A DNA stretch of 64,000 bases, from contig JAHLWZ010000663.1 in NCBI GenBank assembly GCA_020536535.1, positions 45,912 through 109,911 of the forward strand, given 5' to 3'. The position numbers and the translations under genes are program-made. Source of the stretch: Pelomyxa schiedti. Lineage: Eukaryota > Protista > Evosea. The notes below the pieces were generated by a model that saw only the letters and a program-made list of their open reading frames with translations, ran no database searches and was not told the origin of the DNA. Positions 14,822-64,000 of this stretch are shown in pieces. Positions within the stretch are counted from its first letter, which is position 1. The number at the start of each line of letters is the position of its first letter.

Positions 14822-14894
14822 GCCTTCGTAGCACAGTTGGCAGTGCATTCGGCTGTTAACCGGAGGGTCATTGGTTCAATCCCAATCGAAGGCG
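14822..14894 (+). tRNA. tRNA-Asn (GTT)
   Basis: Acceptor stem GCCTTCG/CGAAGGC, anticodon arm TTCGG-CT-GTT-AA-CCGGA, T-loop GGTTCAATCC, and a downstream T-run terminator. Confidence 0.95.
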
Positions 14895-15034: not shown

Positions 15035-15106
15035 GGGCGTATAGCTCAGTGGTAGAGCATGAGACTGCAGATCTTGGGGTCGGCGGTTCAACTCCGCCTG
15101 CGCCCT
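15035..15106 (+). tRNA. tRNA-Cys (GCA)
   Basis: Acceptor stem GGGCGTA/TGCGCCC, D-arm TAGCTCAGTGGTAGAGC, anticodon loop CT-GCA-GA, T-arm GGCGG-TTCAACT-CCGCC. Confidence 0.93.
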
Positions 15107-57353: not shown

Positions 57354-60300
57354 TCAGTCATCACTGTCACAGGACTCGTCGTCATCGTCCTCGTCCTTGT
57401 CCTTGTCCTTGTCCGTATGAAAGCCGCGCAGATATTCACCTGAAGTTGTGTGCCTGTCTTCCGTGGCCTGCCGCACTTGTTCCATTCTCATATGTAACTG
57501 AGGCGCTTTTTCCTCATCGCTGTCATCGCTGACGTAACTACCGTCGCTGTCCTCGCTGTCTGAATCCGACTTTGGGCCCCCCCTTCCGCTGCTATCGTCG
57601 TCGTCGTCATCGTCGTGGTCTTCGTCATCGCTGTGGACGGGCGCGAGGGGGTCGAACGCCCGGAACTTAGGACAGCACCCCACGTGCGTAACCAAAGCGC
57701 ACTTTGTGCACTTGTAGTGCTGCTCCTCCGCGATCGGCCTGTAGCACTTGTCACACCGCACCGCGCGCTCGTCGTCGCCGTCGCCGTCGGCGCCTTCTGG
57801 CTTGGGCGAGGCCGCCTCCTCGAGGGCCAGGGGGTCCTTGTGCTTCTTGATCTTGATCATCGGCGGCGGCGGGACCCAGCCAGCCGTGCACTTGACGTGG
57901 CACCAGTCGTTGCAGCTCTCGCAGAAGTAGACGTACACCTGCGCATCTTTGTCGCCGTCACTGCCGCATACACAGCAGTTGTGTTTGAGGTATCCTGGGT
58001 TATTGCCGAACTGGAGCGGGTGCTTGTGCTCGTTGTTGAGGATGATCCACTTCTGTGGGTTCTGCGGATTCTCGAGGCACTCGATGTGGAAGAACACGTT
58101 CTCGGTGTGGCACTTGTACGCCCACGCGGGTCCCGGTTTTGGCTTGTTGCAGTGGTGGCACGTGAACTCGCCGCTGCTCAGGACCAGCTGCACTGGGTGT
58201 GTGTCTTGGTTGCACTTCTTCCACGTCAGTGGCTTCCCCTCGACGTCGGGAAGTTCCGTGGCTGACAGACAACATCTCACGTGAAGGCCGTATTCATCGA
58301 GCTTGCAATAATAAAACTGCTGGCCAATTTTGATCTCACCATCACATTTGGAACACTCACTTTCACAATACCCAGAAGCCGACGTCAGGGCCAGTGGATG
58401 AGGGTGTGCTCTCTCACCTGAGTCGAGGACCAGATTTGGAAGTTCACGAGGCTTTCCAGCACACTGTGGGTGGAAATAAACACCTTCTGGTTTGCACACT
58501 TTGCACTCAAGTGCCCAGCATGATCCCGGTTTGTCACAGCGGCAACAGTGGAAGTCCTTCACGAACACCATTTTCAACGGGTGTGGGTCTTCAGCGAATT
58601 TCTTCCAGCTGTTTGGCTCTGCCTCGGGATCGGGAAGTGCTTCACAGGGTTGTGTCAGAGTGCATTCAACATCCACGTAGAACGGAGGCTTTTCACAGTC
58701 AACGCAGGTGTAATACGAGTCGGGGCAAGGTTGCTTGCAGAGACCGCACCGAAGCTCACGCAAGCCCCATACTTTCTCAGCGAGTTTGACAGGATGTGGG
58801 TGACATTCGAGGTTCAGCCATTTGGATAACGGGCGGGGATCACCGAGGCAGGAAGGCTCGAAGTCAAGGTCCCTCTTGGGGCAGTGATAAACCCAGCCCC
58901 CTTCTTCTTTTTCCTTTTTGCACTGCTCGCACTGATAAGAACCGCTCTTGAAGACCAGTTGAAGTGGTGTCTCCTGTGCCTCAAACATGCTCCATGAGAA
59001 TATTGTGTTTGGTTTTGGTGGTGGATCTATCTTTTTCTGTTTGAGGCACTTTGTAATTTCAACATTGTGCCAGCACTTTTCGCAGTGATATACAGGGGGG
59101 GAACTCCTCTGGTCCAGACAAACTGGGTGCTCATGACCTTTGTATGTAATCCAGTCTGGCAACTCAGAGGCACCTGACGTGCACCGTGGATGGAAGTCCT
59201 GACTCTCTAAATGGCAGTGATATGCCAATCCCGATCCACCCTCTTCACATTTTGAACAGACAAACTCTGGAGTCGACAGCAACTCGAGAGGGTGTTTGTG
59301 AGACTCGAACTTCATCCACTTGTAAGAGTCGACGGACCATGGGAATTTGAGGTGGGCAAAATCTTTGAAGAGAACATGAACCGAATGTTTGGAAACCATC
59401 TCCCCTGATTGGTTCAGAACCACGATCGTGGGTTCGGCTGTTTGAAGAGAGAGAAAGAAAAAAAATGTAAAAAGAAAAAAAGGGACAAAAGAATCTGGAG
59501 GACAACACACATGGAGTGACATCAAACAGATCCACGAGAGTCTCTTGCAATTCCCTTTCGTCAAACGGAAGATGTGACCAGCCATTGATATCCTTTCGTG
59601 CATTGTTCTTGAACAGTCTTGCAGAGCGATCACAGGAGATCTCAATGATAGCGAACGTGTTCTTTGGTTGTTCTCGAATGAGAGATTCATAGTTTTCTGC
59701 AAGGTGAGCTGTGCACTTCTTGCTTCTTGGATTTGAGTAATTCGAGAAAAACAAACCCAGGAACTTGGGCATCTGCTTTGGTTTTTGTGCTGAAGTCCAC
59801 ACTTTCGTCTTCAGTTTATCCACCTGTGGTTGAACAACCTTTGTATCCACCTCCCTCTCTGTTGTGATTGCTCCAATGATTGCACGTGACTTCAGAAGGC
59901 TTTTGTTTTCCACAGTGAGGCCTTTGACTGTTTGCACGGTTGCATTAGCCGCAACAAGTGGCTGCATCGTGTGGCCTGTTCTGTGAACCAATGTTGCAAT
60001 GAGTCCTTCACCGTTAGGCTTTCTTTCCACACGAATGTAGTGGATATCTCTTCCAGCAACAACAACAAGAATGTTGTCACCAGATGCCGTCACTGAGAAT
60101 ATGTGTCCTGAAAATGGACCCAAAGTGAGGATGCACCTCTTTGGCCAGACCAATTGCCAGAGTAAAATCGTTGACTTGGTTGTGGCGATGGCGGCCACTT
60201 CCCCCTTAAAAAACAGGCACCACGGTCCACCTTGCACAGTGGCACCCATCTTGTGCTGGAGGAAACCTTGTTCTTGCCTGGTGGAATTCTCCCAAGCCTC

Positions 60301-63300
60301 GTAGAGATTCTTTTTTTCTGGGTCACTCTCTGGCAGGTCACTCACCAAGGCAGCGCACTCAAGCAGGTTAAGGTCCAGGGCAACTACAGTGTCTTCGACC
60401 AAGAATAAAAGGTGTCGATCTTCACTTGCACTGTCTGATGCACAACCTTTATCAGCAAGCAGTTTACGGCCCTTTTCTGTCAGCAGCTTTCTGTTGGAAT
60501 CATATTCTGGACTGTATTCGAAAATTGAAGAGTTGCATTCTTTGGTTGTAACTCCTGGGAAAATAAAACCGGGTGAGGGAAACGGAAACGATGGCGTTTT
60601 CGTGATTGTGTGTGTCTCCTGGTCAATGAATACTGCGATATTCCGCCTCTTATGTTTTGTCATGAGCACCATTACTGATTTCCAAGATGGAGACACAACC
60701 ACGGTGTCCCAAAGTACGCTTGCTAGTGGAAGCTTGATTGGTTCCTCCAAGATCAAGCTTGGCGTTGAAAATACTTGTGGAGTCGAGGCTGTGGAACATG
60801 ATGACACCCGAGTATCAGTGGAAACCACAGTCGTTTCTCCACTCATCACTTTCCACACACAGAACATATTGTTGGGATCTTTTGGGATGTCTTTGTCACA
60901 AAAAACCTTGAAATCCTCACTCCCTGGCTCTGGGGTATCATCACCAGCGATATCTCTGTAAATCTCATCGCTGTCGCATTGATCTTCCTTTTCTTTTTCT
61001 CTTACATCATCTCCAACTTTCTTTCTTGTGAGAGCCACACCGAACTTCGCATGTTCACCTTCCTTTGCCGGGAAGAACGACCAAGCCTTGAACTCAAAAT
61101 CGGTTAGTGTGTTGTTGTGTTGGACCATGGTGCCACTGCTCAAATCCCACAAGAACACCGTCGAGGCATCACACCCAGCGACGTACTTCCCATCAGATGA
61201 GAAACAAGGACGCAGATTCTTCTTGTTTGCCTCGTCGAAGTCATGTGGAAGTGGCAATTGTTTGAGACCATCACTTGTCCACATCTCATGCACAAGAACC
61301 CACTTGGAGGATTGGTTTGCATGTTCTTGTGGTGGATTGCTCCCGGAGGAAGAAGCGGCACTCGTCTTCTTCGATTCGGCTGTGTGCTTCTTACTGTCAG
61401 TTTCCTTTGGTTCTGCTGGTCTCCTTGTGACGGTAAGCACTTTGGAGCCACAAGTAGCAACACAACGGCAGGGCCAACTCTCAGTGACCCGCATGTTCCC
61501 AGACGAAGCTTTGACCTCATAAATCTGGGAGTCTCCCAAATAACCAAGTGTGTCTTCACCAGTGAAGAAGCACTTTTGTGCCACGTCGCAGTTCACGTTC
61601 TGTGTCTCGACGTGCAGCAACTGTGTCCCAGCAAGAAGCCATGTCCCTTTGGGTGAGAAATAGAGGACAGAGAGTCCGGAGAACCCACCCTGTGGATCAC
61701 TGACTTGGTGCTCAAAAAGGATACGGAATTCACGCAAGTTCTTCTCAGAGAACTCCCACACCGTCACCTTTCCTGTAGCTTTGGAGAATCCGGCCAGTTT
61801 GTTTCTTGTTGGTGACAATGCAAACATCGAAATGTCGCTCCCAATGTTGGTTGGTGGGTCTTTTGGTGGCGGTGGGGTGCTCGTGGGATCCCCTATTTTT
61901 TCAGCAGTGGGCACCTCCCAGAAAGTGTGGTGATTGTCGGGGGTGTTGGTTGATGTTACTAAAAGAGAAGACTTGATGAAAAAGTGACCAACACAGTCGT
62001 TGAGCGTATGTTGTGGGTGGACTGCTTCTGTTCCTGTGGTTTTTGGGCTCTCTGGCTGTTGCAAGGCAGAAGAAGGGGGAGTCGATGTCGCGGTTGGAGT
62101 GGCAGTGGCAGAGGTCAGGGAATATATGAATGTGTCAAAACCATCCCGGCCTTCTTTGGAAACGGAAATGGCGAGAACGGTGGAATCTTCTGAGAAGCAA
62201 ATGCTTTTGATTGTGGCAGAAGACGACGAGTTGGACACAGCTGTGGACATTCCACCAATCTTGGACGCAGCTGTAGAGGGTTTTTCTTTTTTCCCATCTG
62301 TAGACTTTGGAAAATCAACGTCGACCCAGGTGTTGGGGTGAATGTCCAGAACCAACACAGACTGATCTCCAGACATGACGAAACATATTTTCTTCCCATT
62401 TGGAGAGAACTTGCACTGATTGCACTGAACCTCGGGGCCAACTTCCTTAAGTTCATGGTCCTCGTCAGTGATGTCACACAACAGTGGGAGGCCTTTGTTG
62501 CGTGGGCATGCACAAAGCCTCTTCCCGTCAGCAGAAACATCGACGCACGCAAGACCAACACCAAAATCGAAGGCAACCCTCTCGTTGAAGCTCACACCGG
62601 TCATGTTGCAGTGTGCCAAGTCAGCTCCACACAACCACACCTGCTGCATTTTGCAGTCACTGAAATCAGCATTCACCATACTGGCACCACCAAATATCCC
62701 ACCACTCAGGTCTGCACTGTTGATGTGGATGTGCCTCAAATCCGCGTTGGAGAAGTTGTGTTTTCCTTGAAGAAGAAGCGTCATCGCAGTTGATGCAGCT
62801 CTATCAGCTCTGTGAACCCTCACTTTGCTGCTGTGGGATTCTGTTGCACAACCTTCAATTTTTCTGTTTGTCCACTTGGAATTCTCAACGAGGAGAAGGA
62901 GTGATTTTCTCAGACTGAATGTGTCCTTGTTGCTCGCATCTTCTGGTGTTTCCAATGCATCGTCCCTCCTCATCATCTCCAACAAAAAGCTTACAACATC
63001 GTGGACTTTTACGAGAGAGGACTGGTTCACAACAAGCTCTTGTGGGTACTTCACAACCTTTGTTCTTTTTCCCTTCTCTTTTGCAGCTTGCATCTTCCTC
63101 AGCCTCCTTCGGAGATCGATCACAACCCCCAAACTTGGTCTGAAGTTGTTTTTTGTGATTGTGTACTCAACTTCTTCTTCAAGGTGCAACTCGGGCTTCA
63201 GTGTTTGCGAGAGAACAGAATCACAAGCCTCTTTCACACTGTGCCTACTAGAGTTCATACTGTGCAGGATGTCAGCTATGACTTTTTCCTTGTCAATAGA

Positions 63301-64000
63301 GCATCCCTGAGAGGATTGTGCTTGACAATGCAAGTGTGCCTCTTTTATTTTATGCATCAATTTATCAATACGCGGCCTCATCCCAATAATAAAAAAGAGC
63401 TTCTCAAATAGTCCTCTGAGTCTCTGGAAGTTTGCTTCCTGTTGTTTTTCTGCTGGTACAATAGCGGTGGAGGTGGAAGGCACTGCGGGTGTGGTTGCAG
63501 CCTTGGCAGAAGAAGTGCTTGGAACTGGTGCTGTTTGTTGCTTTTCAGGCACAGTGCTTGGTAGCAACACCCGGAACTTCAAAATACAGTTCTTGCACAG
63601 GTCAAAGTTGCATTTGTAACAATGCCAACGATCGTCATCAGGAGTGGTCAAATCACCCACACTGCTACAGATGTCACATCTCCACCCCCTGTAATCCACA
63701 TATGGGCAGTCCAAGCTCATTCCGTGCTGGCGTTCCAACTTGTGATTGTGGTTTGAAACCTCAGCCAGTTCAAGAGGAGGCGGATCGTCCATTGCAAGGA
63801 AACGGTCTTTGTACTTCAGAAACATATCCGTAATTTCATTACATTCATCTTCATCAACTTCGGCAAAGGGACCCATCATGGAGAACGACCTGAAGTCCTC
63901 GATGATGTCACCACCAACCTGGAAGTTGAACTTGACCTCCTCGACGTCGTCGGTGAGGTGCTGAGTGCACTGTGCCATCCTCTCTGGTGTGATCTTCGAC
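57354..64000 (-). CDS. Very large 5'-truncated protein: ZZ/DC1-like finger, pentapeptide repeats, WD40-like propeller, inactive nucleoredoxin-type thioredoxin, about 9 DC1/C1-like zinc fingers
   Basis: ORF 59245-63978 is open to the window edge. A GT-AG intron at 59438-59510 joins it in frame (TP-S-EPT) to ORF 57354-59702. Motifs: CDIC...WHCYKCNFDLCKNC, FSNADLRHIHINSADLSGG, CKFSPNGKK, FSPKG, FSSDGKY, LGLFFSNYSNPRS...FPWS, and repeated HxHP...CxxC...YxC...HxxC. Confidence 0.8.

Follow-up and report, generated by a model that had tools for sequence, protein, structure and literature searches.

What kind of receptor ends in a thioredoxin fold without its cysteines and an array of zinc fingers, and how did such a tail come to stand behind pentapeptide and WD40-type repeats? 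The question is raised by the gene for Pelo_8394 of the anaerobic archamoeba Pelomyxa schiedti, which lies at the very end of a 64,000-nucleotide (nt) stretch of genomic DNA (G000:C663:45912-109911, hereafter the window), the end of which is also the exact end of the contig. Of one giant STAND NTPase gene, which encodes approximately 3,500 amino acids (aa), the 3' two thirds lie in the window. The gene belongs to a subfamily that is specific to Pelomyxa and numbers four copies, with a core of ARM_5, NACHT, zinc finger, pentapeptide beta-helix, and WD40-type propeller. As an explanation of the whole, we lean towards a bacterial-type NACHT switch with a captured, dead nucleoredoxin/DC1 tail, the most likely role of which would be that of a bait.

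Within the window, the domain order is a ZZ/DC1-like finger, pentapeptide repeats, a degenerate WD40-type propeller, a dead thioredoxin (Trx) domain of the Trx_8 type, nine DC1 units, and an acidic tail (Table 1). All features that an earlier sequence-only reading had listed were recovered on the minus strand, at or close to where it had placed them. On this strand, the frame of exon 1 is open from 63999 to 59511 and continues past the edge of both window and contig, and the reading frame of approximately 6.6 kb is intact in the window copy. A word-indexed protein search identified the GenBank entry "hypothetical protein Pelo_8394 [Pelomyxa schiedti]" (P0002, 2183 aa) as the same protein with an identical splice, in agreement with the amoebal source that the sequence-only reading had assumed. 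P0002 begins at the first methionine within the window, and because the start was placed there, the public model is truncated at its 5' end. The public annotation is hereby corrected: the full protein has approximately 3,500 residues, and the Pelo_8394 model is cut short at the 5' end. The single intron proposed by the sequence-only reading is supported by its GT..AG borders in phase 1, by the same splice in P0002, and by a position shared with two paralogs (62 nt in C381a and 72 nt in C381b, see below). All searches were run with single-exon sequences or with the database protein P0002, which is already spliced. The splice is supported by the Thioredoxin_8 score, which rises from 35.6 bits with exon 1 alone to 49.6 bits once the exons are joined. 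Contigs from a single-cell RNA library, in which DNA carry-over is possible, match positions 58708-59370 (exon 2, DC1 array) without a mismatch, and the paralogs have diverged in this stretch, the closest one, C381a, with a dN of 0.05-0.13 and a dS of 0.25-0.54.

The same part order was found in three more genomic copies, C381a (C381:87.5-98.3 kb), C381b (C381:43.6-54 kb; G000:C381:43602-53992, L017), and C42 (C42:5.8-14.9 kb); across the aligned pentapeptide-propeller region, they share 51-79% amino acid identity with the window copy. All three carry ARM_5 (PF23948) and NACHT upstream of the shared parts, as well as a Walker A, an 'LFILDGYDE' Walker B, and the winged-helix 'FMFLHKSLQEYF' motif; NACHT (PF05729) exceeds the Pfam cut-off in C381a and C42 (29.8-32.5 bits vs 26.7). 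When a profile of the paralog family was searched against the PDB, NLRC4 was the best solved structure, with the winged-helix 'FxHKSxQEY' motif included; a PDB search with one paralog NACHT sequence and no profile gave no match. A Walker A P-loop (GxxGxGK[ST]) is absent inside the window and was found in C381a, C381b, C42, and the contig C2320. The fourth N-terminal half was seen only on the small contigs C209, C4089, C2320, and C3861. Of these, C2320 stops just past an intact Walker A, the only fourth-copy Walker A without an assigned gene, and C3861 combines the Walker B 'LFILDGYDE' with a 49-nt identical overlap with the window end. Together with the paralog scores, these two contigs uphold the NACHT domain that had been predicted past the window edge. 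They indicate that an NTPase lies upstream of the window copy, to which we infer the physical join of C2320 and C3861. In C381b, 13 nt are missing between Walker A and Walker B, which leads to a frameshift and a premature stop, and because of this deletion the public model P0001 starts in the wrong frame inside 'DGYDE'. Either this copy became a pseudogene recently or the assembly is in error here.

A survey of the paralogs for variable added domains, as the sequence-only reading had proposed, did reveal differences. The sister gene on contig C1031 (P0003, KAH3742964.1) has the order ARM_5-NACHT-pentapeptide-WD40 followed by a C-terminal PDEase_I (178 bits), and in the sister gene on C231 the same order is preceded by an N-terminal C2. 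P0003 belongs to the same clade, shares the core, and is 35% identical around the pentapeptide junction, but it adds a phosphodiesterase catalytic domain instead of Trx/DC1 and has more introns. A bacterial-type ARM_5-NACHT-finger-pentapeptide-WD40 core would have diversified within Pelomyxa by domain addition.

The cysteine-rich finger behind the NACHT module remains under the Pfam cut-offs in the window copy (C1_2 15.8 bits; ZZ, PF00569, 14.9 bits vs a cut-off of 21.4), and the same finger in C381a reaches 22.3 bits for C1_2. The sequence-only reading had taken it for an inserted ZZ/DC1 finger; a finger is indeed present at this sub-threshold level, but it is no insertion in the window copy, since all four paralogs carry it. 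Judged by the alignment of the copies, the feature particular to the window copy is the 453-nt deletion beside the finger, not the finger itself. The pentapeptide repeats (PF00805, 31.5 bits vs a cut-off of 20.2) consist of tandem A(D/N)LxX units, and the following region stays sub-threshold for WD40 (PF00400, 24.5 bits vs the 27-bit cut-off). A profile of this propeller region, built from the window gene, C381a, C381b, and C42 together with two distant relatives in Pelomyxa (P0003 and P0012), matched fungal and bacterial pentapeptide-WD40 modules in hhalign with a probability of 100% (E 2e-44, 656 columns), a match that may be driven by P0003 and P0012 with their clearer WD40 blades. The AlphaFold2 model of P0002 385-1400 shows an all-beta pattern at a low mean confidence (pLDDT 45.8), and only the secondary-structure pattern was taken from this model and from that of residues 1390-1700. 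Domain scans of relatives and published work (PMC11291939) agree with the sequence-only reading that the pentapeptide-WD40 junction is of the type that NACHT proteins have in endosymbiotic bacteria and in fungi of the Mortierellaceae. An NCBIfam scan gave weak pentapeptide matches and nothing else.

Behind the propeller, Thioredoxin_8 (PF13905) covers profile positions 2-93 of 94 on P0002, and the Trx domain aligns over its full length with tryparedoxin II (1i5g, E 2.5e-7). In this alignment, S-N-P-R-S takes the place of the W-C-P-P-C of 1i5g, in line with the dead nucleoredoxin-type Trx fold that had been recognized before. The redox motif WCxPC is gone in the paralog C381b (SNPRG) as well, and the module is predicted to be catalytically dead. 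The DC1 array reaches 112.6 bits for C1_2 (PF03107) across 7 stretches in Pfam. By hand alignment, scored for the ligand pattern HxH...CxxC...CxxC...HxxC, it resolves into nine units, which matches the approximately nine fingers counted earlier. Units 4, 5, 8, and 9 come close to the full pattern, the second pair is short of its second cysteine in units 1, 3, 6, and 7, and unit 2 is truncated.

The source of this tail can be traced within the same genome. Two stand-alone nucleoredoxins (G000:C802:10383-12082, L020, and G000:C68:77919-79578, L021) consist of three Trx_8 modules (WCPPC, degenerate, WCGPC) and one DC1, and they are plant-type nucleoredoxins in an archamoeba. The tail is collinear with their third Trx module, 'FPW' motif, linker, and DC1 (31% identity, E 2e-20), and likewise with the third Trx to DC1 of the plant-type nucleoredoxin NRX1 (three Trx_8 and a C-terminal DC1). 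It differs from both NRX1 and the Pelomyxa nucleoredoxins in that it has one Trx module, no catalytic cysteines (SNPRS), and nine DC1 units in place of one, and is fused behind a NACHT-propeller protein. By this collinearity it is well supported that the window subfamily captured the 3' end of a nucleoredoxin gene of the amoeba itself, with the third Trx module and the DC1, that both redox cysteines were lost, and that DC1 was multiplied to nine. As a weak lead, the nearest ESM Atlas clusters to the tail are plant nucleoredoxins, with scores under 0.9. The Trx/DC1 tail alone gave no match at E <= 0.001 in the word-indexed protein search. Additional DC1-array fragments, one of them with an in-frame TGA, lie at G000:C381:98539-99159, just 3' of the C381a stop, and on the small contig C2264; they are remnants of further copies.

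The core leads outside the amoeba. In an exhaustive representative search, neither the propeller nor the Trx part had an outside relative; the remaining matches covered the pentapeptide junction alone, the one part with many such relatives, and a word-indexed protein search with the full-length exon 1 of a paralog returned Pelomyxa schiedti's own proteins only. At the pentapeptide junction, the best matches are the C1031 and C231 genes of Pelomyxa, followed by Mortierellaceae proteins with the same core. A total of 168 relatives were found in bacterial genomes, most of them in metagenome-assembled genomes (MAGs) of Mycoavidus cysteinexigens and others in Coxiellaceae, Francisellaceae, Chlamydiae, Myxococcota, and uncultured Gammaproteobacteria; ARM_5 occurs in bacterial relatives as well. 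A quick maximum-likelihood tree places the four Pelomyxa NACHTs together in a single clade (Shimodaira-Hasegawa-like approximate likelihood ratio test, SH-aLRT, 99) with a gammaproteobacterial MAG as sister (97). In this MAG (L082, CAVYTG010000001.1:1286089-1299156), tandem NACHT-pentapeptide-WD40 genes adjoin a eukaryote-like RhoGAP gene, which suggests that the bacterium lives inside eukaryotic cells. A clade of Pelomyxa and fungi was rejected (approximately unbiased test, p-AU 7e-4) in a test without a Mycoavidus MAG contig nested among the fungi, which inflated the result when included. On a Mycoavidus MAG scaffold (L034, JASSUI010000001.1:2854962-2867966), a NACHT falls inside the Mortierellaceae clade, apart from the other Mycoavidus copies, a position explained either by recent exchange or by host DNA that ended up in the MAG. 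The NACHT core appears to be bacterial-type and to group with genes of uncultured Gammaproteobacteria, not with those of Mortierellaceae and Mycoavidus. The first exon of C381a is intron-free over approximately 8.6 kb, which, at 7.43 introns per gene in the Pelomyxa schiedti genome (PMC8887013), fits a bacterial origin, and the only intron falls in the host-derived Trx part.

The transfer of NACHT-pentapeptide (PPR)-WD40 receptors from Mycoavidus to Mortierellomycota has already been published (PMC11291939), and the N-terminal domain of these receptors was named 'NLR_Helical' (PMC9815663). The Pelomyxa genes share with them the core order of ARM_5 (helical), NACHT, pentapeptide, and WD40 as well as Walker A, the 'DGYDE' Walker B, and the winged-helix motif, at 24-29% identity over the whole NACHT module. 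They differ in forming their own clade and in having an extra zinc finger after NACHT, a far more degenerate propeller, and the C-terminal additions. Among the matches listed for the scanned fungal and metagenomic relatives, with L082 as the one bacterial locus scanned, neither Trx_8 nor C1_2 appears.

Divergence between the copies indicates that the tail is under purifying selection. Few parts of the protein are as well conserved as the dead Trx, whose omega vs C381a is approximately 0.19; the overall omega is 0.2-0.5. On the branch of the window copy, 57 nonsynonymous and 78 synonymous changes were counted (ratio 0.73), compared to 50 and 59 for the sister copy. The fastest part is a block in the propeller region (P0002 aa 977-1289), with a dN of 0.25-0.36 and an omega of up to 0.9 vs C381a. 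Identity between paralogs drops to approximately 50% in this block, compared to 85-95% in its flanks, and dS is raised too. This mosaic could reflect gene conversion outside the block.

The deletion in the window copy directly follows '...DFRSFS' (63880) and removes a segment that is kept in three of three paralogs, all of which also have the winged-helix histidine motif FxHxSxQEY that the window copy does not. A fourth copy of the segment was sought across the assembly, and none was found. The junction is present in reads, as a unitig of run X2, the assembly's own whole-genome-amplified sample, crosses it by 30 nt at normal depth. Winged-helix segments normally lock NACHT in the ADP-bound state; their loss may leave the window copy unregulated or may have made it a regulatory variant. 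The contig breaks at 64000 because its last 121 nt (63880-64000) are identical in three copies, at 100% with both C381 paralogs, with flanks that are 74-89% identical. This 121-nt identity represents gene conversion or a collapsed repeat. In addition, a run X2 contig links window position 60069 to 63089 with 7 foreign letters between them, a joint that is probably a chimera of whole-genome amplification.

Table 1. Features of the Pelo_8394 gene and other features of the window (positions in the window; aa, residues of P0002).
Feature	Position	Strand	P0002 aa	Remarks
Gene for Pelo_8394	57354-64000	minus		two exons; 5' end cut by contig edge
NACHT module, last helical stretch	63880-64000	minus		stops at window and contig edge
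In-frame deletion junction	63879/63880	minus		453 nt (151 aa) relative to three paralogs; winged-helix 'FMFLHKSLQEYF' segment removed
Cys-rich ZZ/DC1-like zinc finger	63586-63747	minus	78-131	in all four paralogs
Conserved linker	62812-63441	minus	180-389	no Pfam family
Pentapeptide-repeat beta-helix	62539-62781	minus	400-480	
Degenerate WD40-type beta-propeller region	59812-62538	minus	481-1389	low-complexity inserts
Fast-evolving block in propeller region	60112-61050	minus	977-1289	
Thioredoxin_8, exon 1 part	59511-59766	minus		nucleoredoxin/tryparedoxin-type
Dead active site	59722-59736	minus		S-N-P-R-S for W-C-(G/P)-P-C; alignment to 1i5g (W-C-P-P-C)
Intron	59438-59510	minus		sole one seen; 73 nt, GT..AG, phase 1, within Trx domain
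Exon 2	57357-59437	minus		stop codon 57354-57356
Thioredoxin_8, exon 2 part	59334-59437	minus		to 'FPW' motif
Nine DC1 (C1_2) units	57675-59300	minus	1536-2077	
Acidic low-complexity tail and stop codon	57354-57674	minus		
tRNA gene	14822-14894	plus		Rfam, 65 bits
tRNA gene	15035-15106	plus		Rfam, 65 bits

With regard to function, the protein would work as a nucleotide-driven switch, and the dead Trx/DC1 tail behind the repeat sensor would be a non-catalytic binding module, its likeliest role being that of a bait that reports factors binding or attacking nucleoredoxin. The architecture and the history, with the gene's anatomy, its set of paralogs, the source of its tail, and the loss of the tail's cysteines, are well supported by the sequence comparisons. 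Several points weigh against the interpretation as a whole. Immune, redox-sensing, and decoy roles are drawn from analogy and sequence. An output, adaptor, or membrane-targeting function is just as conceivable for the tail; in the sister gene, the added domain is an enzyme (phosphodiesterase). The full ligand set is absent in half of the DC1 units. Confidence is low in both AlphaFold models (pLDDT 49.8 for P0002 1390-1700, and the lower value given above for the propeller), and among the RNA-library contigs searched, none spans the intron or connects NACHT with the tail. The tree lacks a root, its sequences stem from a quick search, and the tested group was named post hoc. Furthermore, the window copy is without the winged-helix segment at a junction seen in one sample only, the amplified source of the assembly, and together with the C381b frameshift this loss may mean that the family is partly decaying.

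An output, adaptor, or localization function of the tail, in which the DC1 (C1-like) fingers bind membranes or partners and the dead Trx is a scaffold, is possible, though we rate it as rather unlikely. It would fit the PDEase_I end of the C1031 gene and the membrane-binding C2 at the start of the C231 gene, and nine DC1 units resemble an avidity or scaffold device more than a mimic of a nucleoredoxin with one DC1. STAND output domains are usually N-terminal to the NTPase, however, and this place is occupied by ARM_5 in every member; moreover, a loss of catalysis with a fold that stays constrained is typical of integrated baits. That the window copy is a decaying or non-switching paralog, disabled by the loss of 151 aa with the 'FxHKSxQEY' motif and with an open frame that is merely recent history, seems quite improbable. 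The missing fourth copy of the segment, the frameshift between Walker A and Walker B in C381b, and the fairly relaxed overall omega would all suit such a decay, but the deletion is in frame, the remaining frame is intact, and the RNA-library contigs are identical to exon 2. A nonsynonymous to synonymous ratio of approximately 3:1 is expected without selection as a rough estimate, and the ratio on the window branch is well under this value and like that of the intact sister. Finally, an artifact in which a NACHT-WD40 gene and a nucleoredoxin-like neighbor were misjoined, or became a chimera in amplification or assembly, is hardly tenable. The genome was sequenced from amplified single cells (PMC8887013), run X2 contains one chimeric joint, and the contig ends within the gene, yet the frame is free of stops from the propeller into the Trx domain, which is itself split by the intron, and the junction, intron position, and domain order are repeated in three diverged paralogs on two other contigs.

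For the preferred interpretation of the tail as a bait, plant receptors of the nucleotide-binding leucine-rich repeat type (NLRs) with integrated domains offer the closest analogy, RRS1-WRKY and RGA5-HMA among them. Rice Pi-ta is a plant NLR with an integrated thioredoxin (PMC9528084). The Pelomyxa protein is likewise a STAND receptor with a host-derived domain of lost activity after the repeats, and the derivation from a host protein is seen in the collinearity of the tail with the amoeba's nucleoredoxins. It differs in that its NTPase is a NACHT and not an NB-ARC, in that its repeats are pentapeptide/WD40 and not leucine-rich, and in its independent origin, with a core of bacterial type. By this analogy, an immune reading as an "integrated decoy" is plausible. 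In its full form, namely that an amoebozoan independently reinvented the integrated decoy by equipping a NACHT-WD40 receptor of intracellular bacteria with a dead nucleoredoxin that guards a redox hub against effectors of symbionts or pathogens, we consider it unlikely. If true, the effectors guarded against would come from bacteria and archaea living inside Pelomyxa or infecting it.

For the family, the bacteria-to-eukaryote pattern of NACHT-pentapeptide-WD40 proteins, known from Mortierella fungi and their endobacteria, is extended to protists with this archamoeba, in which the core was rebuilt with captured pieces of host genes (nucleoredoxin, phosphodiesterase, and C2). The system also offers a natural test of the repeated origin of "integrated domain" receptors.

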